Shown here one piece after another: positions 6,102 to 63,399 of a stretch of 64,000 nt of DNA. This DNA is from Macrostomum hystrix. Lineage: Eukaryota; Animalia; Platyhelminthes. Position 1 is the first letter of the stretch. Each line of letters opens with the position of its first letter. Below the pieces are notes generated by a model, which made no database searches, had not been told where the DNA came from, and saw nothing but the letters and a program-made list of their open reading frames with translations. Position numbers and translations under genes: made by a program. The stretch is taken from NCBI GenBank assembly GCA_950097015.1, contig CATNEN010000031.1, forward strand, positions 744,001 through 808,000. Reading direction: 5' to 3'.

Positions 6102-6567
6102 ACTCGAGAAACCTATTTTTCAAGTTTTTTAAAAACTAATGAAATTTATCGAAAGCGTTAGTGCTACAAAATGCTTTCTTTAAGTTCTAATGCGAGCCTT
6201 TATTGTGAGATCAAATTGGTTAATATTATATGTTCATTTTATAAAAAACACTACAATATGGATTCACAAGCGCACAGGAGTACAAAGTGTTGCTAAGCCT
6301 GTCATTTAACATTGTGCATTGTGAGATCATTGCAGAAAAGTTATAATAGACTAATAAGGAATATCTAACATTGCATGTTTAATAAAAATACATAAATACT
6401 TTATTGCAGAAATACTACGGTTAATAACAGGTTTTCTGTTTTGCTTGTTTTAGTGATTTGTACTTTGTTACTAATTTGAGTTTTGAAATTGAGTTTATTT
6501 GAATAGTTTTAAGTCAACACAACCTGTGCGTGGGGTCGCTTCCTGACAAACCCAAACGTCTTTCTGA

Positions 6568-9500
6568 TCAGCTGGGCTCGACATCCTCGCTATCAAGGTG
6601 ACCAACAATGGTCAGGTAGATGGTCTCAGTGCTGTCCGCCAGGTCGGTCTCAGTCAGCTGGCCCTTGACTACAGTTGCGTACTCAACTGGCGGGGTGCTC
6701 TGCAAGTGAACGGTTCAGCGACTCGGTTGAAAAAACTTTTTTACAATGTTATAAGCATCTATTGAACAGGGTCACGTGTTCCTAGGTCCTTGAGAGGTCA
6801 ACGTGTTTGCCCGTGGCAAGGTCCCTGAGCTCGACTCCGCAGTGAGGCGCAGCCGTCTTGTCGTGCAATATGCACCCCTTCGGGCCAACCTCCGAGGCAC
6901 AGTGAAATTGTACACTGCCTAACGATGAGAATTCAGGGCAGATGTACACTGCCTGCATACAGTATGTGTGTGTGTGCTCGGGAGTCAGTGGAATAGGCAG
7001 AATTGCCTGTCGCTTGCTGAGGTCAACTGTCCACCAAATGATGCGCCTAATAGCTCGTAATATAGTTTTCGGTGAAAATCAGCTGCCAGTTTTTGCCAAC
7101 GAAACTAGAGTGCTCTGTCTTTTAAACTACGGTACTAAAAGTCCATCTTCTAGTCGTTGCCTAGCCGGGGTAGTTGCCTAGCTGGGGTTGTAGCCTAGCT
7201 GGGGTTGTAGACTAGCCGGGGTTGTAGCCTAGCTGGGGTTGTAGCCTAGCTGGGGTTGTAGCCTAGCTGGGGTTGTAGCCTAGCTGGGGTTGTAGCCTAG
7301 CTGGGGTTGTAGCCTAGCTGGGGTTGTAGACTAGCCGGGGTTGTAGCCTAGCTGGGGTTGTAGCCTAGCTGGGGTTGTAGCCTAGCTGGGGTTGTAGCCT
7401 AGCTGGGGTTGTAGCCTAGCTGGGGTTGTAGACTAGCCGGGGTTGTAGCCTAGCTGGGGTTGTAGCCTAGCTGGGGTTGTAGCCTAGCTGGGGTTGTAGC
7501 CTAGCTGGGGTTGTAGCCTAGCTGGGGTTGTAGCCTAGCTGGGGTTGTAGCCTAGCTGGGGTTGTAGCCTAGCTGGGGTTGTAGCCTAGCTGGGGTTGTA
7601 GCCTAGCTGGGGTTGTAGCCTAGCTGGGGTTGTAGCCTAGCTGGGGTTGTAGCCTGCTGGGGTTGTAGCCTAGCTGGGGTTGTAGCCTAGCTGGGGTTGT
7701 AGCCTAGCTGGGGTTGTAGCCTAGCTGGGGTTGTAGCCTAGCTGGGGTTGTAGCCTAGCTGGGGTTGTAGACTAGCTGGGGTTGTAGCCTAGCTGGGGTT
7801 GTAGCCTAGCTGGGGTTGTAGCCTAGCTGGGGTTGTAGACTAGCCGGGGTTGTAGCCTAGCCGGGGATGTAGCCTAGCTGGGGTTGTTGCCTAGCTGGGG
7901 TTGTAGCCTAGCCGGGGTTGTTGCCTAGCTGGGGTTGTAGCCTAGCTGGGGTTGTAGCCTAGCCGGGGTCGTTGCCTAGCTGGGGTTGTAGCCTAGCTGG
8001 GGTTGTAGCCTAGCTGGGGTTGTAGCCTAGCTGGGGTCGTAGCCTAGCTGGGGTTGTAGCCTAGCTGGGGTTGTAGCCTAGCTGGGGTTGTAGCCTAGCT
8101 GGGGTTGTAGCCTAGCTGGGGTTGTAGCCTAGCTGGGGTTGTAGCCTAGCCGGGGTTGTAGCCTAGCCGGGGTTGTAGACTAGCTGGGGTTGTAGCCTAG
8201 CCGGGGTTGTAGCCTAGCCGGGGTTGTAGCCTAGCTGGGGTTGTAGCCTTGCCGGGGTTGTAGCCTAGTATTTAGAGAATCGGACTTAAATGTCGGCGGT
8301 TCGATGCCCCGACTCAACTGGAACAATTAGTGTCCTTTAGCAAAGCACTTAACTCTGCATTGCTTCAGTTCACCCAGCTGTTAAATGGGTACCAGCATTA
8401 GCTGGGATAATTGAGGGTGGTTGTGGCGTCCCACCAGCCCATCGACTGTACAGCCGTACGCAGCCTTCAGATGCGCCACGCAATAGCTGAGGCTGTGACA
8501 TCGGCTGCATCTGGCCCAATTGGGACAGGTGGAGTCAATTATTATTATTGCTTTATGCACCCAAAGTGAAGTAGCCGTAATGACTCACTTTATGTAAGAA
8601 CACATGCAAATAATCGGAGCCACACGAGTATAATAATAATAATAAATTTCTGTTTGTTTGCCAAACAGAGGGTTAATAGGCTACCGTGAATAAGTTATGT
8701 GTCCGCATGAACTCGGTCTCCGCGTCCGGCGAACCACTTCGCTTTCGAGTCATCGGACTTGGCGTTTCAATCCGACCCGCGCCGCTGCCGTCCGAATTGC
8801 TGCCTGCAACTTCGCGGCCGCCAATAAATCGGAACCAGAGCCGCAGGAATATACAATTGACCGACACCAGGACGACACCAAAGACCAGCCCCAGTGCCAG
8901 CAGAGATCCGAATGAGGCGAAGAATGCTCCACCCGCTGGGCTCCCGGATGAGTGCGCGGCTTCAAATTCAGGTTCAAGTACTATCGGTAATTTATTGCAA
9001 ATCTACTAGCCTGAATTATCCAAGTGCTTTACAGTATATGTACTTCAAATTTAAAAAAACATTGCAACAAAATATAACAATACTTTACGAAGACTCACAT
9101 GGTGAGGCATATCTAGAAGTAGTAGCCACTGATGATTTGACTTGAAATATGTAGTCATTGTCATCGCGGAATTCCGCAAACTCCTGTGTTACTGAGCAGG
9201 TAATGTTGGCCGTCAGAGAACGCTTGTCGATTTCAACCTGAACCGAGTGCGTGCCGAAGCGGAATCCATCCGAGTTCAATGAACTATTCGAGACCACCGG
9301 CTGAAAAAACGATTTAAAAATGGCATCTATTGGCGATGCATTTTGAAACGCAAAACAGGTTCAAAGGGGTTTGTCGTTTTGAGCTCACGTATCGAATTCC
9401 AGAGTCGGTGAGCAGCGAGCAGTTCACCCGCGGGCTCGGGTTTCCATCGGTCACATTGACGTGAACAAGCACCGTGTTTCCTGACATTGTTGATCCTTTC

Positions 9501-15850: not shown

Positions 15851-17250
15851 TTTGGATTTGGACTGAAGCTTCTGGGCTCGGGCGGCAACTGAAATATTTC
15901 CCAGTTCAGAATGTGCAACGTCAATGCACTAATTAAGGAACGACAAAGACAATGTTCGAGCGTAAGACTTACACTGGGCTCTGAAAATGAGCTCATATTC
16001 CGGAGTCGAGCACTTGTGAACGTCTTTTCAATTGAAGCATACGTTTCCATCTTAAATGCCGATTTATAAACTTCAATGCACTCTTGCGCTAAAAGGCTAG
16101 ATCCAAAAATATCTGTATATCTTATTATCTATCTGAAAGATAACACAAGGTAAAAAAGAATAATTAGAACCGGCTCACGGGCAAGTAGGAACCGTCTTCA
16201 GCTAGATAAGTGTCAACAGTACTGCTTTCATTTAGTCCTGTCTAAAATTTGCGAATTATAATCAAAGCCTTTGAATCCTAGATGTTAATTTTTGCATATT
16301 AATTCGCAGTTCAAATGCCAATAAAATCTTACCATTAAAATCCTCCCAGTTCTGTCGGGAACTATCTAAAAATAATATTTTGTCATGAATGTTTTGGTAG
16401 GCAAAACTACCAACTGCTTGAATTGCAGCCCATCACAAGAAGTACCATGTACCATGATTCACATGTATTATGTTATATTTTCCATAATGTATATGTTGTT
16501 CTGCATACCATGATTTACATGTACCATGTTCTATTTACCATGATATAAATGTACTAGGCTCTATGTACATAATGTAAATGTACATGTTCTACATATCATG
16601 ATGTACATGTACATGCAAATCGTGATGATTGCTACTTATCAGTAGACAAGCAGGTTAGGAAACAAGTGAACTCAAGCAAAGTGGCTTGAGATTGGCACCA
16701 ACACGCACTGAGCTACAGGACATAACTATTGCACGTCAGGGATGCAAAATTTTTCACCCATTATCATGTCCACAGTCCAGTTAAAACACTTCCATCAAAC
16801 TGATTTGAATCGCTCGCCTAGGGGCTTGCCAGTCCCTAAGAGCTTACATAGGCCTCGTTGTCAGCTGTTACAGAACTCCGATCAGCAGTGCTAGGCCTTT
16901 CTCGTAAGGCACAGTCTGAAATGCAGGCATATGAAACAGAGCCACATAAAATGGTCCAGGGCGACTACTAGATGCACAATGTTGGCATACCGTTGTGTTT
17001 TTCTCAAATATTCCAGCTGTCAAAGTCTCCTCATCGTACTCAGTCTGAAGTGCCAAAAAGCTTGCGATAATGGTTCTGATCAACCGAAACTGAAATCTAG
17101 AAGCACAGCTTTGAGTGACTTACGTTTGGATCCCTATTAGCAGTCCCATGCGCCTGCGGCAGGGTGTTTTCCTCCTCGTATACCGTCTGAAATGTTACAA
17201 TGCTTTTTAGCATATACAACTCAAGCATTGAGTCTGGCATCGTTGTAGGG

Positions 17251-17764
17251 CAGGGGTAGGCAAACTTATTTGCTGGCGGGCCAAAGAGAGAGCCCAAAAG
17301 ACGACAGCGGGCCGCATTGACTGTATAAATATGAGATAGGGGAGAGATTAGACACGGGAGAGATTAGACACGGGAGAGATTAGACACAGGAGAGATTAGA
17401 CACGGGAGAGATTAGACACGGGAGAAATTAGACACGGGAGAGATTAGACACGGGAGAGATTAGACACAGGAGAGATTAGACACGGGAGAGATTAGACACG
17501 GGAGAGATTAGACACGGGAGAGATTAGACACGGGAGAAATTAGACACGGGAGAGATTAGACACGGGAGAGATTAGACACGAGTGAGATTAGACACGGGAG
17601 AAATTAGACACGGGAGAGATTAGACACGGGAGAGATTAGATACAGGAGAGATGAGACGCGAGAGAGATGAAACAGGACACTGTAGATGTCAGAAGGGGCA
17701 ACGGGCCGATTTGGGAGCTTCGAGGGCCGCATCTGGCCCGCGGGCCGGAGTTTGCCGACCCCTG
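17251..17764. mobile_element. hAT (Charlie-like) MITE carrying an internal 16-bp minisatellite (TTAGACACGGGAGAGA, ~17340-17670)
   Basis: TIRs CAGGGGTAGGCAAACT / AGTTTGCCGACCCCTG; 8-bp TSD TTGTAGGG at 17243-17250 and 17765-17772; GGGCCGC subterminal motifs. Confidence 0.92.
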
Positions 17765-18610
17765 TTGTAGGGGGTGGTAGAGGATTTACAAAAGTTATAA
17801 TTTGAACCCCTGAGAAAAAAATTACATTAGGATCTCTCGCTGCGGGCTGCACTAGATTCTCCTCCTCGTAGTAGATAGTCTGAAAAGTGAAGAGCTACGT
17901 GTTTGGCAGCCATAAAGGCAGTCTATGTTTGTTCATGTAATTCAGTACTAACGTTGGGATCTCTCTCGGGATAAAGCTGAACTCCCGCCGACTGATCCTT
18001 AGCTTCCTGCTCAGTAGCAGCTGAAGAACCAGTCCGCTTCAGCAGCCCGATTGCGACGACGACTATGACAACACTGGTGACGGTCACAGCAATGATGGCA
18101 ATAATCAGCCTATCAGTACTAATACCAACAGGGACAGGGGAGTGGGTGTTTTGAATATCCCGAATGCCTCCGTTTGATCCTTTCAGAATGTAATCTGGAT
18201 GATGAACTAGCTTTGAAAAATGCTTCTTGATATATTCCTCAAAGCAAGAAATATTCACCGACTGTTCATGCTTAGGCAGTTGAACAGGGAACGAGTGCAG
18301 GCCTTTAGAAAGCGCGCTGCGTCTCAGCAGTGCCTGCAAATGAAACTAGCCAAATACCATTTCAGAATAAGAAAATGTCTTGCAAAAAGCTTAATGTTGT
18401 ATTAGCGAGTGGAATTTTCGGCAAATACTAACGTTCTGCTGAGCTCCAGATCCCACGAGCACTGAGCAGCTCAAATTCGGTGCGGGATTACCATTTGTCA
18501 CATTGATGCTCACGTTCATTGTTCCATCAGTTTGGAAATGTCCCGAAATGCTCACAGTCGATTCGACTAAAATGAAAGCAGGTCTAATTAGGCGACATTT
18601 AGCAGCGAAT

Positions 18611-18832
18611 CGGAATGCAGAGGAAGAGGTTTCATATTTTTCCATGTGGAAGGCAATAATTAGAGTCTTATAAAACTCTAGGTGTTATTGTTATGGTGTT
18701 ATGGTCAGTCAGAAAGCAACTGAGGTCCTCAAAATTGATTGTCTAGCCTATTTTCTCTTCTATTCGCTTCGAGATTTTAGCTACGGATCAGGAAATAATG
18801 CTAAGAGTTAAAGTGAAATTTCTGTGCAGTTT
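18611..18832. repeat. ~220-bp near-identical inverted duplication, paired with 24772-24992
   Basis: Reverse complement alignment by eye shows only 1-2 differences. Confidence 0.92.
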
Positions 18833-20176
18833 CCCAAAACCTCGTGCGCCTTTCCAGCTCCTAATTAATAATTACGAGAAGCAGCAAACTTACAGCGAAC
18901 TGAAATTCGCATCTGAAAGTGCTCATCCAGATCAGGGAAGCCAGCTTGTGCAACGCGACAAGACACGAATTCGTTGTTCATCTCTCTCTTGGATGCCAAG
19001 CTGAAGTTGGTAACAATCAGCGACTCGGTTTCGGATGCATTAGCAACCAGTTTTGTGTTAGATGTGCTGAGCCAACAGCTATGCTTGGGCTTTGGCTTTC
19101 CACCAACTGAGCTCACTGAGACAGTTAGCAACCAGTTTTGTGTTGGATGTGCTGAGCCAACAGCTATGCTTGGGCTTTGGCTTTCCACCAACTGAGCTCA
19201 CTGAGACAGTTAGCAACTCGCCCTCCTTCACGGCTAGCGATGACACCACAGTGCTGGGACCCTCTTACAGAAAACAGAGAGCGTTTTATTCGCCCAGGAG
19301 TGCAGGCTATCGTCCTGATAGAGCTGGCATGCCAGCTGCCGGTTATTGTACTCTCTGCGCGAGGTCAGCGCAAACATCAATCCACATGAGGATTCTGTTA
19401 CCTGACAAAAATATTTTTTTGGTGTGACTTCATGCGGCGAGGCCACATTCACTTGGGATGCAGCCCCGAAGAGAAGGCTTGAGGGCATGGCTTCGGCTTG
19501 TAATTTAGACTTATGGCGGGCCAACCCCCCAAGACCCAGAGAGGGTGACGACGAGAAATTCAGGGCAGATGTACACACCTGTGTGAGTGTGTACCTGCGT
19601 TACGCGTTTGAATGCGTGTGAGAGCAGTGGTCAGCGGAATGGACAGAATTGCCTCCCCGTTGGTTGCCAGTGTAGCTAAATAACTTGAATGCGTGTGAGA
19701 GCAGTGGTCAGCGGAATGGACAGAATTGCCTCCCCGTTGGTTGCCAGTGTAGCTAAATAACTAATCAGTGCCCACTACTCCCCGAATATCATATAGAGAG
19801 CTCCATACACCTACATTGTCCGCGGACACTCGAGAGTTGCCAAGCCAGCATGTGTAATTGCTAACTGCGGGTCTTCCTCCAGTCGATATGAGTGTCACTT
19901 CGATGCTTTTGCCTTCAATCACGCCACCTGGCGGACTGATGATCATGTAGCTCCACGCGACGTCTGGAAATTGAATGGCTTTTGGTTGCTGAGCAGCGTT
20001 TAATTCAAAATAAACCAGTAAGACAGACTTGTACCTACAATTAACAGTGATATTGATGACTGTGCTGCTGCTGTACGTCTTAGAATAAAGAAAAAGGAGG
20101 CGTGTTTGCACGGCCGTGCAGTTCAGCCTCGTGTCGCGCCAATCCGGTATGAATCTCAGCTTTGTCGAGTACGTAT

Positions 20177-23100
20177 ACCCCTGTATATCTTAGGGTGTTA
20201 TATCCCACCGGAAAATTCTAAATACTACAAAGAAGATATATGGGAGGAGATTAAATATCTCATCCAGCTCTTCTCAAGAGAGGGCTCCGTATTAACAGTA
20301 GGTGACTTCAATGCACGAACTGGCACATTACAGCCCAGCACTAGGGATAAGTTTCCCAGACAGAATCAGGACTCTGAGAAAAACAAGCATGGATTAAGAC
20401 TGATGGAAATGTGCTCCGAGACCAAGAGCACGATTCTGAACGGAATGACTCAGGGTGACATTATGGGAAATTACACGTTTAGTAGCACACTAGGCCGAAG
20501 TACCATAGACTACGCTATTGTATCCATGGATAAAGTGGATATTATAAAAGACTTCTTTATTCATCCTCAAAGCTTTCTGTCCAGACATTGCCCGCTAACA
20601 GTCACTCTGATTTTTCCTGATCATGTCCAACCCGAACACGCAAACCAGGAAAAACATGAATCCTTCCCAATGCCTCCAAGATGGGACACTGAAACGCAGG
20701 GAAGTTACATTGAGGCATTGAATAACAAACAAAGCGAAGAAATAATTAGAAAGTTGCAATCTATCGACGCACACGATGGAAAATCCCTGGAAAATTTGTT
20801 CTCGAGCTTGACCAACCTGCTTAGAGACTCAGTGGCAGAAAGCTGCGCAAAGACAATCATTCCGAACAAGTTCTGGACAAATCGAGACGAGACACTAAGA
20901 AACTTGAGCAAATCATTAAAGTACGTGGCCAGGAAAAAAAGACGTAGACCAACTGACAGCGCGCTGGCATCAGAATATAATGGGCTAGCGAAAAAATACA
21001 AACAACAGCTCAAGAAACTTAAGCAGATGGACATAAATGACTGCATTCAGAAAATGGCGGCTAACGGAACCTCAAAGGGATTCTGGTCCGGTCTTAGAAA
21101 AGCAGAAGAGTTGCTGTTCCCCAGCAGGAGACTTAACAGACCTCAAGCCCCAATCGCTGACATCGCGGACAACCTAACCAAAGTGTTTAACGCACATCCT
21201 TCTTTGGGAACCCAGCCGCATCGCACAGATGAAGCAGTTAGTCCCGAAGATTTAATTAGCTGCGTAGATCTCGATAGAGCAGTTAAAAAGCTAAAGAGAA
21301 GAAAGGCTGCAGGAATAGATGGTATAACAAATGAGCACATTATCTACGGACAAGAGAAGCTAAAACCCGTACTTCTGAAGCTTTTTAACGCAAGCGTAAG
21401 ACTCGGCCAGACTCCTGCACAGTGGTCAAATGCCCTAATCACACCGATTTATAAAAAGGGTTCCCGTAGTGACCCCAAAAACTACAGACCCATAAGCGTG
21501 CTGCCTGCCCTGGCTCGCCTGTTTGCCTCACTTATCTATGAAAAGCTAGAAACTCATATTCGCACCCTCGACTTGCTTTCAGCCAGTCAAATAGGAAATA
21601 GAAAGGGCTACCGAACTTCAGACCACATTGCCACTCTCTTGACGTTGATCCACAACAAAAAGCGTCGCAAAAGGCCATTTCACTTAGTGTTCTTTGACTT
21701 AAAAAGCGCATTTGACATGGTCCACCATCCAACACTTTTCCAACGACTTAGGGAGTTAAAGGTCAGCCCAGAAATAATCGAAGCAATACAAAGCATGTAC
21801 TCAGGAGCTAAATTCCAACTGAAGATCTCAGATGGCCAAGCAACTAAGGCAAGGAGCATAACAAATGGAGTAAGACAAGGCTGTCCCCTATCCCCTCTAC
21901 TCTTCTCACTCTATATAGATCCTTTGAGCACAATGCTAAGGGATTCATTTCGCAGCGACACCTTCATTAAAGATGAACAAATCAACAACTTGCTATACTG
22001 CGATGATTTAGTGATCTTTGGAGAGAATCCTCGAGAGTTGCAGAAGGGCCTCGATAAAGTGTCAGAATTTTGTCAGAGCCACAAGCTAGAAATCAATATG
22101 CAAAAAACTAAGGTTATTAGCTGTTGCCCTGACCCATCAAAGACGGCTAACAAACTATTTCTGCAGGGACAACTGTTAGATAGCGTCAAAGAATGGAAAT
22201 ATCTTGGCTTTCACATCAATGCTAAAGGAACCGTGGATTCCCATGCCACAGAGATTAACAAAAAATGTGGATATCCTATTCTTCTCTTAAGGAAATTAGC
22301 CAGCCATGGGGCGGTCAGATACAACCAGCTCATGCTGTACTGCACAGCAATGATAGAAAGCATAGCTCTGTACGCCTCTGAGGCCTGGGGGGCTTTTGTC
22401 TCGTGGAACCTGGGTCCTTGGGACCGCTGTCTTTTTGAAAGAGTAAACATCAGGTGCTGTAAAGCCATACTACAAGTCAGCCAAAATACGGATGGCAACG
22501 GGGCCCGCTCGGAGTTAGGCAGATTGCCTTTATTATACAACATCCAGAAAAGAAGCATTTCGTACTGGGCCTCCATAACAAGCCGGCCGGACTCCATAAT
22601 TTCCAAGTTATTGGCGGACCAAACATACAGTGATGTTGGAATCAAAGCAAAGACCAACAATGACGTTATGCTGAACTGCAGAGGCATTAGTCCTGCAAAA
22701 GCAATTGGAAACCACAGGAAAAATTTCGTTTCTCAGTTCGATACCCATTGGAGACAAAGGACACAGAACTCAAGCAAGCTAAGTCACTTCTATTACTCCT
22801 TCAAGCAATATTATTCAGCCGAAAAATATTTACAACAAATATACAACCCGGAGTGGAGACGTACCATAGCCTCGTTTAGACTAGGAAACCATAAGCTAGC
22901 TTGCGAAACATTGCGAACTGCGAGACCGAAAATTCCGTATGTTAATAGATTATGTAGTAAGTGCAAAACAGAAGTTGAAAACGAGGTCCACTTCCTTTTT
23001 AAGTGCACTTGGAATAAATATAGCGCAGCACGTTCGAAATTTGAGACGGAAGTTTCTGGGAAAACCCCCAATTTCATATCCTTAACAGCAGAAGAAAAAT

Positions 23101-23446
23101 CTAACTACATAATGGCTCAAGACGATAGGGAAACCGCTGAAGCTTTAGCAAAATACATCATAGAAATATCTAAAATAAGGGAACAGCTGCCCTGAGACTA
23201 CGAGATCTTACTAGCATTCAACAATAGATATTTCATATTTTGTTTTATCCCTGCCGTCCCTTGTGTTTTTACTGCTCTTATTTTTAATACCTTTGCTTTC
23301 CCTTCCCAGCTCGATATTTGATTCCTACTAAACTTCGCTTTTTATGTTGCTTTTCGCTGTTCATTTAAATGTGTTGTTAAAAAAAATATAAAAAAAAAAA
23401 ATCAGCACCCATAGATGGCGTGCGCGTTTTAATAATAATAATAATA
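20177..23446 (+). mobile_element. 5'-truncated non-LTR retrotransposon: partial APE, RT, C-terminal CCHC; ORF to 23195; (TAA)n tail; 6-bp TSD ACGTAT
   Basis: VGDFNAR, TIDY and SRHCP (APE); YRPISVL, FDLKSAFD, GVRQGCPLSPLLF, YCDD (RT); CSKC...HFLFKC; TSD at 20171-20176 and 23447-23452. The first ~24 codons of ORF 20106 are antisense host exon. Clade uncertain (RTE-X/Proto2-like). Confidence 0.95.
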
Positions 23447-25565
23447 ACGTATCATTGGAATGCAGATCCACTGTTGCATTATTTGGCTGAAATTGTTAGG
23501 TGTGTGTGCTTAAGTTGATATACGCTCACATATATATATGATCATGTAGTAGTACTACACACTATTGATTTTGAGCTTACGATTTTACTGAAGTCAGATT
23601 TGCAGCTGTGAGTTACTCTCTGGTTTCTGTGTGCCTGATCCGAACTGACCGTGACTTCGACAGTGCTGTTCTCATAGATTCTGTCGGGTGTAACTTTAAT
23701 GCTAGGAGGATTCGGTTGATCTGGAGTGGGTTTTCAAGTAGCGACAGATGATTGACTTTATCCATTAAAGACATTGAGCCACCCTTATTCTTAATAATCA
23801 AGATAATAATCTATATCGCTAGATTGATAAAGTTATGTGCATAAAAATGTATGCTAATGGCTGAGGTAGGAATGTGGCATAAGTATGCAATCTTGAATAA
23901 CTTTGGAGTCTGGGCTGGCAGCTTGTTCCGTAGAGAATCAGCAAAGTACTCGTAGATTTTGGAGCATTGGGAGTTGGGTTTGTTTGAGACACTTACATGG
24001 ACTGAACAGCTGTACCCCGTGCCTGCACTGGCGGTTAATCTGGCCCAATATGATTAGGTGTCATTTATATTAATTTTTGTAGGTTTAATAATTTTAAATG
24101 TATTTGATTCGTCCTGATCAGATAAAGACAGGGCTTGGATTTCCAATTGCAAGCTGAAAGCCGAGACCATTTTAAAACTAGCAGCACTATACATTATGGC
24201 TAACATATTATGTCGTTCAAAGTTGAGCTGCGGATGATCTGCTCGAATACGATAGTGACATTGTGCCTCTGGACAGCTGTGCAAGATATTTTATGTCTGT
24301 TATGGGCTTGTTCAGGTGCAAATTACTCTTAACTCTTAACTTCAACCATCAGTTGTCATTATTGCAATGTCAAACTCTCACCGAATCCGAGCGGGCACAG
24401 AGAAGTACTGAATACGATCAGCGCAATCAGTATCAGCATGATGGCCGCCGCGTGTTAAACCGGACTGCTCACTACAAAAGCAGAGCTGTTTGAGCAAATT
24501 AGCTTTTAGAGCCTCCTATAGAAATGACGTCCTGTGTGATAAATAGGATAAATTTCGCAGTGCGAAAAATACTAGATTTCGAAAAATGAACATCTAATTG
24601 GCGCAGTGTATTTAAGTAAACTATTTGACAGGATGTAGAGCTCAGTTCTGCAAATAAAAGCTACAAAAAGTCAACAGACAATGAATCCTGGACCTAGTCT
24701 AAAAGCTCTGTAGCAGCTATAAGCCTTACAAATGGCAGGCGTGGATTCTGAAGCTTTCTTGATAAGCAAGAAAACTGCACAGAAATTTCACTTTAACTCT
24801 TAGCATTATTTCCTGATCCGTAGCTAAAATCTCGAAGCGAATAGAAGAGAAAATAGGCTAGACAATCAATTTTGAGGACCTCAGTTGCTTTCTGACTGAC
24901 CATAACACCATAACAATAACACCTTGAGTTTTATAAGACTCTAATTATTGCCTTCCACATGGAAAAATATGAAACCTCTTCCTCTGCATCCGCCTTTTGT
25001 TTATCAGGTAAAATGTGATTTAAGCATGAGTCATAAATGCGCGCTATTAATAAATTAAGAAAATGTTCCACTGAAAAACTTCCAGAATCACAAAACATCA
25101 GCATCGTCGAGATTTCCAACGATTCTAGTAGGGGGTGTCTGGCGGCAAAACCACCATAGGCATAAATGTTTTGCTCACAATACATTCACATTTAAATTAA
25201 TCATTTACGCGTTTCACGGCCCGACCGCTGTGCATATCTATGGAATTCTACCATAGACAACAGCAGAGGTCGGGCTGCCATTAGTTTCAACCTCGTCTCA
25301 ACCTGGATTTGCCATAGAGGTTTATACTGAGCCATGTTTGTTGTCCTTGTCAGCAGGGTCGTCGAAAATAAAATACTAAAAAGTTATTTTAGTATCTATG
25401 GAAAATGCTGAGGCTGGACGGCATTGAAAGTTAGTTCATCGTTAAGGGCGGAAAATTAAATTTGACCCATATGGTGGACTTTCACGGTCCTTCGGTTTGG
25501 GAGCTATCGCGAAGTCGGCAGTGGGTATTTGAAATACCCTGCATGGTCTTTCCCCAGGCAAAAAT

Positions 25566-38226: not shown

Positions 38227-41200
38227 CTACATCTGGCCCTCTTGATGGACACCTCCAATCGAATCAAACGGCTGGCGTATGACTCGTCCGTTGCAGTCGC
38301 AGCTGACAAATGTCCTACCGTCGGTGTCAATGTGACCCACAATGTCTGTGTACAAGGTGAGGCTGCTCTCGGAGAGCTCTGCTGGCGGAAACTGACTGGA
38401 TGCCCCCGGTTCTGGTTTCACCACTTGCACGTAAACATCACCGGAGTCTGCGTAAGAGGTACCAGGCATGATTAGTGGCAGGGCAGGTGCGACAGACTTA
38501 GCCGCATTGTCATGTGTCGCTAGTGTGCCTGTTTTGCTAGGTATTGCCAGCTTTGTAGATTTGCCACTTGCGCCACATTTTGTTGGCTTAGCAGATTTGC
38601 TGAGAGAAGCACGTTTAGCATTAGAGGCTCGATCAGATCTGGGGCGCGAGGCGGATTTGGCCGTTGACAGCGGTCGGACTCGTCTCCCAACAGCCAGTTC
38701 AGAGACTCTGCGGCCAGTGGCGCCCGTCGGCTTGCGGCGGCTGCGTGCGATGCAGAGAGCCACAATGAGACCCAGGGTGAGCAGCGAGGCCGTTGTTGTC
38801 GAGATGCCAATTCCCACTGATATGAAGAACAGATGGCTGGGCTCAGTTGAAGAGCCTCCGGGAATCAAAGTGGTGGCCATTCGAATTGCAGTAGCTGAAA
38901 GTTTAAATCGATCAATGAGAATTATAAATTTAATTTCAGCTTTTTGTATGGCAGAAAAACAGCAGATTTAAATCAAATATATATATAATAAATCTGTGTC
39001 AAATCATTCTAAATGTCAGAAAAAATAGGATAGGGGAAACGTAAATTACTGTATGATATAAAGGCTAAGGCAAAAATTCAACATTTTTATTTTGGCTTGC
39101 CTATAACTCCCATACAAATACGGCAGTTTTATCAGTCAATTGACTTACTTATTATACTAATGAATACAACACTATGTGCTCACAATCAGCTGTAAGGCTT
39201 TCTACGAGCGTGAATTAAAAACAAGGCCTAAATTTTTCTCTCCGTGGCAATGGCTGGCTGGCTTAGAATATCTATGGTCTATTTCACATGGGGAACCACT
39301 CCGATAATGTTTTTGCTAAAATTTCGTCTTTTAAGCTTGCAAGTTAAAGGCATTGTGCAAACAGAGAGAAGACTACAGAACGGGATGCTCAATTGCAAGG
39401 ATACCAGTCTAATACACCCATTGTCCTACAGACAAATAATCGTTTCATTGGTCTGAGGCAGAGCTGGCGCATGCGTCAACTTGCAACCGTCAAGACGGAA
39501 GTTAGAATTTAAAAATATATTTTACAAGTTAGAAAACTTAGAAAAGCTGTTCAACCGACAATCGCATGAACTGAATAATTGTTGGATAAGCTAGCTAGCA
39601 CTGCATTAACTCAATTTAATAATCATTGACGACTCAATAGCTACCCAAAGTAAAAAGCGATCGCAATGAGCTTAGCTTAGCATTTCGCATGTACAATGTA
39701 CTTACTTAACTCACTGCAGTTAAATGAATGCTCTGTTCGATTGAGCACATTCTTGCCAGCTGCAGTTTGATTCACCTGGCAGACTATCAGGACATGGCTT
39801 GTAGCTTGGCATTGCTGCTGTGAAATCTCGAGAATCGTACCATTTTCAACTGGTAAAAGTTTCGGCACTGACACACTGGATTCGCTCTGCAAAGTTGGGG
39901 TCGCGTTCTCAGTTTCGGAAGACTTGTGAGGGTGGACACGTCAGGCCCGACAGCAGCGCACGGATGCTTGAGAATTTGAGAATAAAAGACGTGAACGAAA
40001 GTCAGGAAGGGAGCAGAAGACGGAAATTAGGAAGCTAGAATACGCTTGTATTGACATAACAAAGCTGATACGAGCGAATCTGACAAGGACAATAATGAGA
40101 TAGGATGATTGGCAAAGTGAACGATTGTACTGAAATATTTCAATGAATATAAGCAAAACTTGTAGCATAAAAGGACAACGAATTCCAAACCTATATGAAG
40201 AAATGCACTCACTGAATTCATCGAACACATTGTACTTGGCTTTGGATTCGCTTCCGAAACTGAAACTTCCACTGACACGTGCCTTTGGTTCAGTCGATGA
40301 AGCTTGACGCTAACCCGAGGCTGATCTACCCGAGGTAAATCAATAACAGAAACTGGTAATTGGATGATGATGACAAATAGATAAGAACTATTCTGTATCT
40401 CTCACAAAATACGCTGACGTTTTGAACAAGCTGATCAGCTCTCCTTGAGCACGGGTGATTAGCGATGCACACCAGTTTGGAGCCGTGCATCGATCGACGC
40501 GCTGCGATGCGGAACGCGGACTGGCCGTTCGATTCAGCAATATTCTCTAGTGAGATGTTCTCCTGCAAAGCAGTTCGTTCAAGAATTTTGTGCTTATGCC
40601 ATTCCTATATGCCAATAAAGCTATTGAAAACCTACAGATGGGAGTTTAGTCATGAGTAGCAGCCAGCATTGGTGCTTCACTTGAGGGCTGTCACTGACTG
40701 AGCTGACATTGACAGAAATGCCGTCGCCCTCCCAAACACTGACAGTCTGCGTTGCAGTCCATCTGCTTTCTGGCTGCTCTAAAACGGAATAATTATAACA
40801 TCAAGAACACGAAACGTAAACGAATCCGCCTCAGTGCGCAGTGTCATCAGGCGAGACGCTGGGTTGTCTACTACGAGTATTTTTCCTCAGCCTAATGTAG
40901 AGTGCAGAATTGCGGTAATATTTATTTTAACCAATCATGCGCTAGCTACTCTACTCAACCGCTTAGTAGTAGTTTTTAAAATGCGAACCAGAAAACATAC
41001 AAGTACAGCATGTGATTCATTTTAACAAAAAGGAGAAACGAATCAATCAAAAGTCATGTGACTACTATTAATAGTATCAAATCATTACGTTGTTTAGCGC
41101 TGTTTTGCGCTACTAAACAGAAAAATTCCGCAACCCAACCACAATGACTCCTGCAAGGCTCTGAAAGCAACCGACTTGCGCTCAATGGAGCTCATTCACT

Positions 41201-62161: not shown

Positions 62162-63368
62162 AGGAACCGTGGATTCCCATGCCACAGAGATTAACAAAAA
62201 ATGTGGATACCCTATTCTTCTCTTAAGGAAATTAGCTAGCCATGGGGCGGTCAGATACAATCAGCTCATGCTGTACTGCACAGCAATGATAGAAAGCATA
62301 GCTCTGTACGCCTCCGAGGCCTGGGGGGCTTTTGTCTCGTGGAACCTGGGTCCTTGGGACCGCTGTCTTGTGGAAAGGGTAAACATCAGGTGCTGTAAAG
62401 CCATACTACAAGTCAGCCAAAATACGGATGGCAACGGGGCCCGCTCGGAGTTAGGCAGATTGCCTTTATTATACAACATCCAGAAAAGAAGCATTTCGTA
62501 CTGGGCCTCCATAACAAGCCGGCCGGACTCCATAATTTTCAAGTTATTGGCGGACCAAACATACAGTGATGTTGGAATCAAAGCAAAGACCAACAATGAC
62601 GTTATGCTGAACTGCAGAGGCATTAGTCCCGCAAAAGCAATTGGAAACCACAGGAAAAATTTCGTTTCTCAGTTTGATACCCATTGGAGACAAAGGACAC
62701 AGAACTCAAGCAAGCTAAGACACTTCTATTACTCCTTCAAGCAATATTATTCAGCCGAAAAATATTTACAGCAAGTATACAACCCGGAGTTGAGACGTAC
62801 CATATCCTCGTTTAGACTAGGAAACCATAAGCTAGCTTGCGAAACATTGCGAACTGCAAGACCGAAAATTCCGTATGAGAACAGATTATGTAGTAAGTGC
62901 AAAACAGAAGTTGAAAACGAGGTCCACTTCCTTTTTAAGTGCAGTTGGAATATGTATAGCGCAGCACGTTCGAATTTTGAGAAGGAAATTTCTGGGAAAA
63001 CTCCCAATTTCATATCCTTAACAGCAGAAGAGAAATCTAACTACATAATGGCTCAAGACGATAGGGAAACCAATGAAGCTTTAGCAAAATACATCATAGA
63101 TATCTCTAAAATAAGGGAACAGCTGCCCTGAGACTACAAGCTCGCATTAACATTTAACAATATATATATTGTTTTATTCGTGGCGTCCCTTGTGTTTTTA
63201 CTGCTCTTATTTTTAATACCTTTGCTTTTGCTTTTCCCTTCCCAGCTCGATAGTGGAATCCTACAAAACTTCGCCTTTTATGTTATGTTTTTCGTTGTCC
63301 ATTAAAATATTTGTCAACAAAAATATATAAAGAAAAAAAAATCAGCACCCATAGATGGCGTGCGCGTT

Positions 63369-63399
<31 letters not shown>
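62162..63399 (+). mobile_element. Heavily 5'-truncated LINE of the same family as 20177-23446
   Basis: Matches ~22226-23446; ends ATCAGCACCCATAGATGGCGTGCGCGTTTT(AAT)n; no TSD found. Confidence 0.95.

Follow-up and report, generated by a model that had tools for sequence, protein, structure and literature searches.

The window analysed here is a stretch of 64,000 nucleotides (nt) from the flatworm Macrostomum hystrix (contig CATNEN010000031.1, positions 744,001 to 808,000). Its minus strand carries gene B, the product of which is a type I membrane receptor. It belongs to a family specific to flatworms whose domains appear to be immunoglobulin (Ig)-like. The intracellular tail of this receptor is encoded by a series of short exons, here called cassettes, placed behind the exon for the transmembrane (TM) helix. 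Their splicing repeatedly joins the residues D-P-N to T-x-Y (written DPN/TxY below, the slash marking the splice junction). A second gene of the window, gene F, has a tail of the same layout.

Three parts of the protein come from the TM exon of gene B (18333-17953, minus strand, like all exons of this gene): the second half of the final Ig-like domain, the membrane helix and the basic stop-transfer stretch LKR. The exon closes in phase 0 with ERDPN, ahead of a gt donor at 17952-17951. Cassette 1 (17879-17826, 54 nt, TIYYEEE...RDPN), cassette 2 (17186-17124, 63 nt, TVYEEEN...RDPN) and cassette 3 (17044-16991, 54 nt, TEYDEE...KNTT) are each open in frame 0 only, with phase 0 at either end, a pyrimidine-rich ...cag in front and gt behind; cassette 3 has lost the RDPN end. 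The borders given to these three cassettes in a first-pass annotation of the window are exact, with AG before and GT after them on the minus strand. For the fourth cassette the annotation had proposed 16915-16872, of which the start is correct; the exon runs on to 16848 (68 nt) and a gtaagc donor, from which it is spliced to 16365. In frame 0 it reads TVPYEKG... up to a stop codon (TAA, 16870-16868), and the +2 frame is open as far as the donor. The suspicion that this exon is frameshifted proved justified. Compared with the 69-nt cassettes of gene F, to which it can be aligned, this exon (16915-16848) lacks one base, and its +2 frame is open; on this evidence cassette 4 is a decayed copy that has shifted frame and whose stop codon has become that of gene B. 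An assembly error at this position was ruled out, the RNA contigs being identical to the genome there, with no indel. Lengths of 54-68 nt exceed the usual limits for micro-exons (about 27-51 nt, by the definition used), the name under which the cassettes were first described, and they are therefore referred to as short exons. Cassettes 1 and 2 are separated by an intron of 639 nt (17825-17187). An intron of 482 nt (16847-16366), spliced in one RNA contig, follows the stop codon and leads to an exon of the 3' untranslated region (UTR) that starts at 16365, for which 16333 is a possible donor only.

The contigs of two public runs, X1 and X2, whose type is not given in their record, cover the locus at a depth of 2-9. 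They jump nine introns, each with GT..AG borders on the strand of the gene, and are thus derived from transcripts. The TM exon is joined to cassette 1 (17953/17879) in X1 and X2, cassette 1 to cassette 2 (17826/17186, with removal of the 639-nt intron) in X2, cassette 2 to cassette 3 (17124/17044) in X1 and X2, and cassette 3 to cassette 4 (16991/16915) in X1, all on the minus strand and with GT..AG borders. A further X1 joint (16848/16365) connects cassette 4 to the 3' UTR exon. Cassettes 1-3 are hence spliced in, in order and in phase 0, and their splicing recreates the DPN/TxY(Y)-acidic junction at three intact sites, both as foreseen in the annotation. Two contigs (16754-16877 and 16685-16848) continue across the last donor that another contig splices, so that two 3' forms exist. 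Joints that skip a cassette, by which the number of phosphosites had been supposed to be tuned, were absent from the contigs of X1 and X2, which hold consecutive joints only, at a depth of 2-9 and in a type of data that drops rare forms.

Gene F repeats the layout of the gene B tail. Its TM exon (55930-55586, minus strand, as for the following exons) precedes cassette F2 (55504-55436, 69 nt), which is without tyrosine, ends in ERDPN and has a GC donor, and cassette F3 (55267-55199, 69 nt, TIYYEEN...RDPN). The terminal coding exon (55110-55060) reads TMYEYADGG...TYVN and ends with the stop codon. All of this is retained in a copy on contig C2 that is about 90% identical, including the GC donor of F2. 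Between F3 and its C2 counterpart there are three differences, all synonymous, against an overall divergence of about 10%. In this F-like copy (locus L019, G000 C2:542340-545412), the upstream AG that would be possible for the gene F TM exon is lost and the corresponding extension contains a TAA, which supports the downstream acceptor ttttaag/AAT as the real one in gene F and in the copy.

A search with an Ig exon of gene B led, at 36-45% identity, to gene clusters on contigs C3 (8.02-8.05 Mb) and C7 (0.53-0.60 Mb), whose paralogs are the best matches of the gene B Ig exons (35-45% identity). Five of these paralogs have short tails (loci L050-L054, G000 C3:8029632-8044768 and C7:549863-572869), consisting of a TM exon and a last coding exon of six or seven codons. 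Their TM exons end in ADPN/ or PDPN/, and 70-83 nt further on follow cag/TVYYYEE, cag/TVYYDA or cag/TVYYEA, each with a stop codon. The tyrosines, whose conservation in paralogs the first-pass annotation had made a test of its proposal, thus recur both in gene F and at other loci of the genome. The comparison of cassette numbers that it had suggested reveals differences among paralogs that stem from duplication; a contribution of splicing was not seen.

Every member of this flatworm-specific family has a phase-0 intron within D-P-N/T-x-Y-(Y)-acidic. In the 220-Mb genome, eight genes share the conserved unit, which is D-P-N/T-x-Y, split by the intron, rather than tyrosine plus acidic residues; of their 13 junctions, 11 show it. 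The five short-tail paralogs have one copy at the extreme C-terminus, gene F and its C2 copy have two, and gene B has three. At the 11 junctions D, P, N, T and Y are constant, although they are encoded by 2, 4, 2, 3 and 1 different codons, respectively. The flanking positions vary, with R, A or P ahead of D and I, V, E, M or R between T and Y, and apart from the motif the identity between the B and F TM exons is just about 30%. At the level of sequence, such a constant DPN/TxY with varied codons in a diverged background is the signature of selection on the peptide. Within the window, a scan of both strands for exon starts of the type AG/T-x(1-2)-Y(Y)-[DE][DE] recovered four, of which gene F has one and gene B three. 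When searched in the 220-Mb genome, the complete pattern of a cassette (cag, T-x-Y, two acidic codons, 12-66 nt, DPN, G) gave four matches, against none for a control with the reversed pattern. The terminal-exon pattern (cag/TVYY(Y)[DE][EA] plus stop) has five matches genome-wide and likewise none in the control. DPN/GT alone was discarded as a search pattern, being too short to inform (1045 matches versus 1212 in the control). We regard DPN/T-x-Y-Y-acidic as an undescribed conserved motif of a lineage-specific flatworm receptor family.

The distribution of the motif suggests how the cassettes may have arisen. The starting form would be the one retained by the five paralogs, in which the TM exon ends in DPN and the last coding exon is tiny (TVYYYEE, TVYYDA or TVYYEA). 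In the lineage of B and F, a tandem duplication that spanned the intron, with the TM exon's end on one side and part of the last exon on the other, would have joined the start of the last exon to that TM-exon end. The product would be a self-contained middle exon that begins with T-x-Y-acidic and ends with R-D-P-N. Repeated duplications of such a unit would stay in frame each time and could have given rise to the three intact motifs and one decayed cassette of gene B and the two motifs of gene F. Consistent with this route, the cassettes are similar in their 3' halves to the 3' ends of TM exons, and their acceptors lie in comparable sequence contexts. We consider it very probable that the structure, splicing and duplication history of the gene B tail exons are as described.

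The assignment of the gene B family to Ig-like receptors is based on sequence hallmarks (GGxPxP..CW and N....C.V) that recur in nine paralog exons. A Pfam search with ten exon-level open reading frames yielded no significant match, and no Ig match at E<=1. A hit of Cadherin_C_2 over the TM helix was dismissed as sub-threshold (E 0.037; 15 bits, where the cut-off is 31.5). A profile search against the PDB gave just weak matches, with E about 0.5, to IgG Fc and nectin-4. The AlphaFold2 (AF2) model of one Ig exon was all-beta at low confidence (pLDDT 56), and its Foldseek matches were weak, non-significant Ig-like sandwiches. A word-based protein search with the TM exon found no match and did not recover the query itself either. 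When the B, F and C2 TM exons were compared by exhaustive profile search with 1.84 billion representatives, 0 matches at E<=0.001 were returned, which is weak evidence of absence given a short, fast-evolving query. No Rfam family matched positions 16000-20300.

Glycosylation-rich Ig-like exons upstream and basic residues past the helix place the tail in the cytoplasm. Tyrosine sulfation and N-glycosylation of N-T-x were ruled out as roles of the motif, the tail being cytoplasmic by the positive-inside rule and N-T-[IVE] being no sequon. Each junction would instead form a docking site on the inner tail, similar to NxxY and read by an adaptor of the phosphotyrosine-binding (PTB) type. Phosphorylation of the tyrosines in I/V-Y-Y-acidic would serve as a switch, as in the RDNVYYYDEE segment of E-cadherin, and exon duplication would raise the number of docking sites per receptor. 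Asparagine occupies position -3 (N-T-x-Y) at 11 of 13 junctions and is constant despite synonymous change, while the sequence downstream of the tyrosine is just loosely acidic or Tyr-rich (YY or YYY followed by D/E, the sequence pattern of the E-cadherin segment, at 8 of 11 junctions). PTB domains read the residues N-terminal to the tyrosine, usually as NPxY (PMC3507883). Because the constant residues of the motif precede the tyrosine, with N at -3, a PTB-type reader is likelier than a Src SH2 domain. The E-cadherin segment binds the PTB domain of Numb when unphosphorylated and the HYB domain of Hakai after phosphorylation by Src, for which the acidic flank is required (PMC3507883, PMC3164458). 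In the genome, PID/PTB domains have at least 12 matches and SH2 domains 77, and there is a single zinc finger of the Hakai type (48.8 bits); candidate readers thus exist, as in any animal genome. What the motif tentatively suggests is docking of the NxxY type, switched by phosphotyrosine and with the sites multiplied through tandem duplication of exons; we would put this predicted function at somewhat below an even chance. For the account as a whole, in which structure, history and function are blended, the balance tips slightly in favour.

The first-pass annotation had read the tyrosines differently, as substrates of Src-family kinases and pYEEI-like SH2 sites on symmetric exons that are alternatively spliced to tune the number of phosphosites. 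Several features agree with such a reading. An I or V directly before the tyrosine (-1), with acidic residues in the two positions behind it (+1 and +2), suits acid-preferring tyrosine kinases. The three intact cassettes, being in phase 0 at both ends, give DPN/TxY in any combination, SH2 domains are numerous in the genome, and gene F ends in TYVN, a Grb2-type pYxN site. Src-type SH2 domains, however, bury a hydrophobic residue (I, L or V) at pY+3 (PMC7337045), and all 11 intact junctions have E, N, A, Y or D there. The tyrosine followed by two acidic residues is shared with the ligand pYEEI, but its defining hydrophobic residue is missing in every copy of the motif. The variable residues, moreover, follow the tyrosine and the constant ones (D-P-N-T) precede it, the reverse of what an SH2 ligand of this type would lead one to expect. 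The restriction to consecutive joints in both RNA runs adds a weak argument, weak since contigs lose rare forms. Taken together, these points make the Src/SH2 explanation unlikely. The patterns of the immunoreceptor tyrosine-based inhibitory, switch and activation motifs (ITIM, [SIVL]xYxx[IVL]; ITSM, TxYxx[VI]; ITAM, two YxxL/I 6-8 residues apart) do not describe the gene B tail either, where T-x-Y is present and Y+3 is never I, V or L. An alternative that dispenses with phosphorylation would see in the motif a sorting or anchoring signal near the C-terminus, either a PDZ-type ligand or an endocytic signal, with the internal copies of B and F as by-products. Some adhesion molecules do end in Tyr-rich PDZ ligands, and five paralogs end in the motif (YYEA, YYDA, YYYEE). 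Endings in E-E nevertheless lie outside the PDZ classes, and the hydrophobic residue at Y+3 required by YxxPhi is absent. The internal copies of B and F have retained the motif with synonymous change only, and since it is intact at these internal positions, its value is independent of a free C-terminus. We therefore consider a C-terminal signal highly improbable.

Several observations weigh against docking sites multiplied by exon duplication, some of them concerning the motif and others gene B itself. The canonical proline of NPxY at -2 is replaced by threonine, the proline standing at -4 (PNTxY). The docking function is predicted from the logic of the motif alone, and the likeness to E-cadherin spans about ten residues and could be due to chance. 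Protein searches found no relatives beyond this genome, so that the conservation described is that within one genome. Intron-to-intron homology among the cassettes is weak, and the duplication route is inferred from the exon ends only because the introns are too diverged. Within gene B, an 85-nt unit is tandemly duplicated at 19040-19217 (minus strand, 2.1 copies, 98% identical). The Ig exon in which it lies, 19233-18894, measures 340 nt instead of 255 nt as a result; the frame breaks, and a stop codon follows 14 codons past the first copy. An X1 contig (19061-19175, no mismatch) fits only across the copy junction, and the duplication is therefore transcribed. A 99-nt phase-0 intron (18334-18432, minus strand), for which a C7 paralog has an intron at the equivalent position, contains two in-frame stops, and the contigs of both runs cover it with no spliced joint in either. 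The tail of gene B may thus go untranslated from the assembled, transcribed allele, and gene B may have been disabled recently or be represented by a null allele. One can go further and regard gene B as a transcribed but decaying copy, whose cassettes are well-preserved relics with no translation any more and whose tail currently serves no purpose in this strain; at the level of the whole family, this would be compatible with docking at the motif. Besides the two lesions named, cassette 3 without its RDPN end, the frameshift of cassette 4, the presence in gene B introns of a long interspersed nuclear element (LINE) and a miniature inverted-repeat transposable element (MITE), and the lack of a second copy or allele in the assembly all point in this direction. 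That lack also served to rule out a haplotig copy of gene B. The duplication is young, however, as its 98% identical copies indicate, and may belong to a single allele, and use of a predicted acceptor in the second 85-nt copy would keep the frame. Insertions in introns are harmless. The splice sites of the tail are all preserved, as are the three motif junctions, and the transcript undergoes splicing; the preserved sites and junctions speak for a recent date of any loss of gene B. Decay of gene B is accordingly a serious contender, to which we give a little less than an even chance.

Short tyrosine exons in receptor tails have precedents. The intracellular domain of PECAM-1 (CD31) is encoded by the short exons 9-16, and the exon content determines signalling and adhesive behaviour (PMC2132561). 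PECAM-1 and, going by its sequence hallmarks, the gene B product are Ig-family type I receptors. The inner tail is in both made of short exons, and a single tyrosine is found in each of several of them; in gene B these exons measure 54, 63, 54 and 68 nt and are supported by RNA. The exons of PECAM-1, in contrast, are not repeats of one another, their tyrosines stand in ITIM-type contexts and their alternative splicing is demonstrated, whereas the gene B cassettes are tandem duplicates of one unit, with the motif across the splice junction and no skipping seen. The juxtamembrane motif of E-cadherin, read by the PTB domain of Numb, Hakai's HYB domain and p120 (PMC3507883, PMC3164458), shares with gene B the succession R-D-(P)-N, one or two residues, V/I-Y-Y-(Y) and an acidic run, with N upstream of the tyrosine, in the inner tail of an adhesion-type receptor. 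It differs in that cadherins are not Ig-like, in the spacing (N-V-Y versus N-T-V-Y, one residue) and in the GGG core for p120, which is absent from gene B. The FcoR/fester genes of Botryllus (PMC11507803) and the Alr genes of Hydractinia (PMC9546547) resemble the present family as clustered, fast-diverging receptor genes whose tyrosine tails differ among paralogs or alleles. Unlike the flatworm genes, they use canonical ITIM, hemITAM or ITSM sequences, and an intron-split motif multiplied as an exon-sized repeat is not reported for them. The principle of tyrosine motifs on short tail exons of Ig-family receptors is known from PECAM-1, CEACAM1 and invertebrate allorecognition receptors, and the advance is therefore modest. 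What is new is an undescribed motif that spans a splice junction and has a clear duplication history. It provides an RNA-backed case of gain in a receptor tail, in which duplication across one intron would have made a C-terminal motif a repeatable, in-frame exon. Short DPN/TxY peptides are directly testable for the kinases and adaptors involved.

Two neighbours of gene B and gene F in the window, genes A and D, have ITIM/ITSM-like pairs at their ends (minus strand, 6500-6760 and 38250-38500; VEYATV...TIYLTIV and DVYVQV...TLYTDIV). Since the tails of B and F carry DPN/TxY, one cluster mixes two kinds of tyrosine tail. Because the motif lies across the splice junction, any set of cassettes, duplicated or skipped, recreates intact sites, and the number of docking sites could be freely adjustable; B and F may also be the counterparts in function of the ITIM/ITSM-tailed A and D. 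This extension is a long shot. If true, it would amount to a paired receptor system in a flatworm, with a previously undescribed motif.

The MITE in the 639-nt intron between cassettes 1 and 2 is of the hAT type (17251-17764, 514 bp), with terminal inverted repeats CAGGGGTCGGCAAACT / CAGGGGTAGGCAAACT and an 8-bp target duplication CCCTACAA. It includes a minisatellite of 16 bp (17340-17668), is present in at least 80 copies in the genome and shows a very high RNA-contig depth. The LINE is 5'-truncated (about 20200-23450, plus strand), with an open reading frame of 1029 amino acid residues for an endonuclease remnant and a reverse transcriptase, and lies antisense in an intron of gene B, a further exon of which (about 23721-23557, minus strand) is situated beyond it. 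A 94% identical copy of the 3' part of the LINE is found at 62162-63387, near the end of the window. Positions 18615-18832 and 24772-24989 form an inverted duplicate of 218 bp (99.5% identical, with only two copies in the genome). This pair flanks about 6 kb with Ig exons of gene B and the LINE, and might promote an inversion or be the trace of a composite insertion. In an intron of gene B, a 77-bp unit occurs exactly twice (19608-19762). The adjoining stretch 19516-19649 has an RNA-contig depth near 2900 and is therefore part of an abundant repeat.

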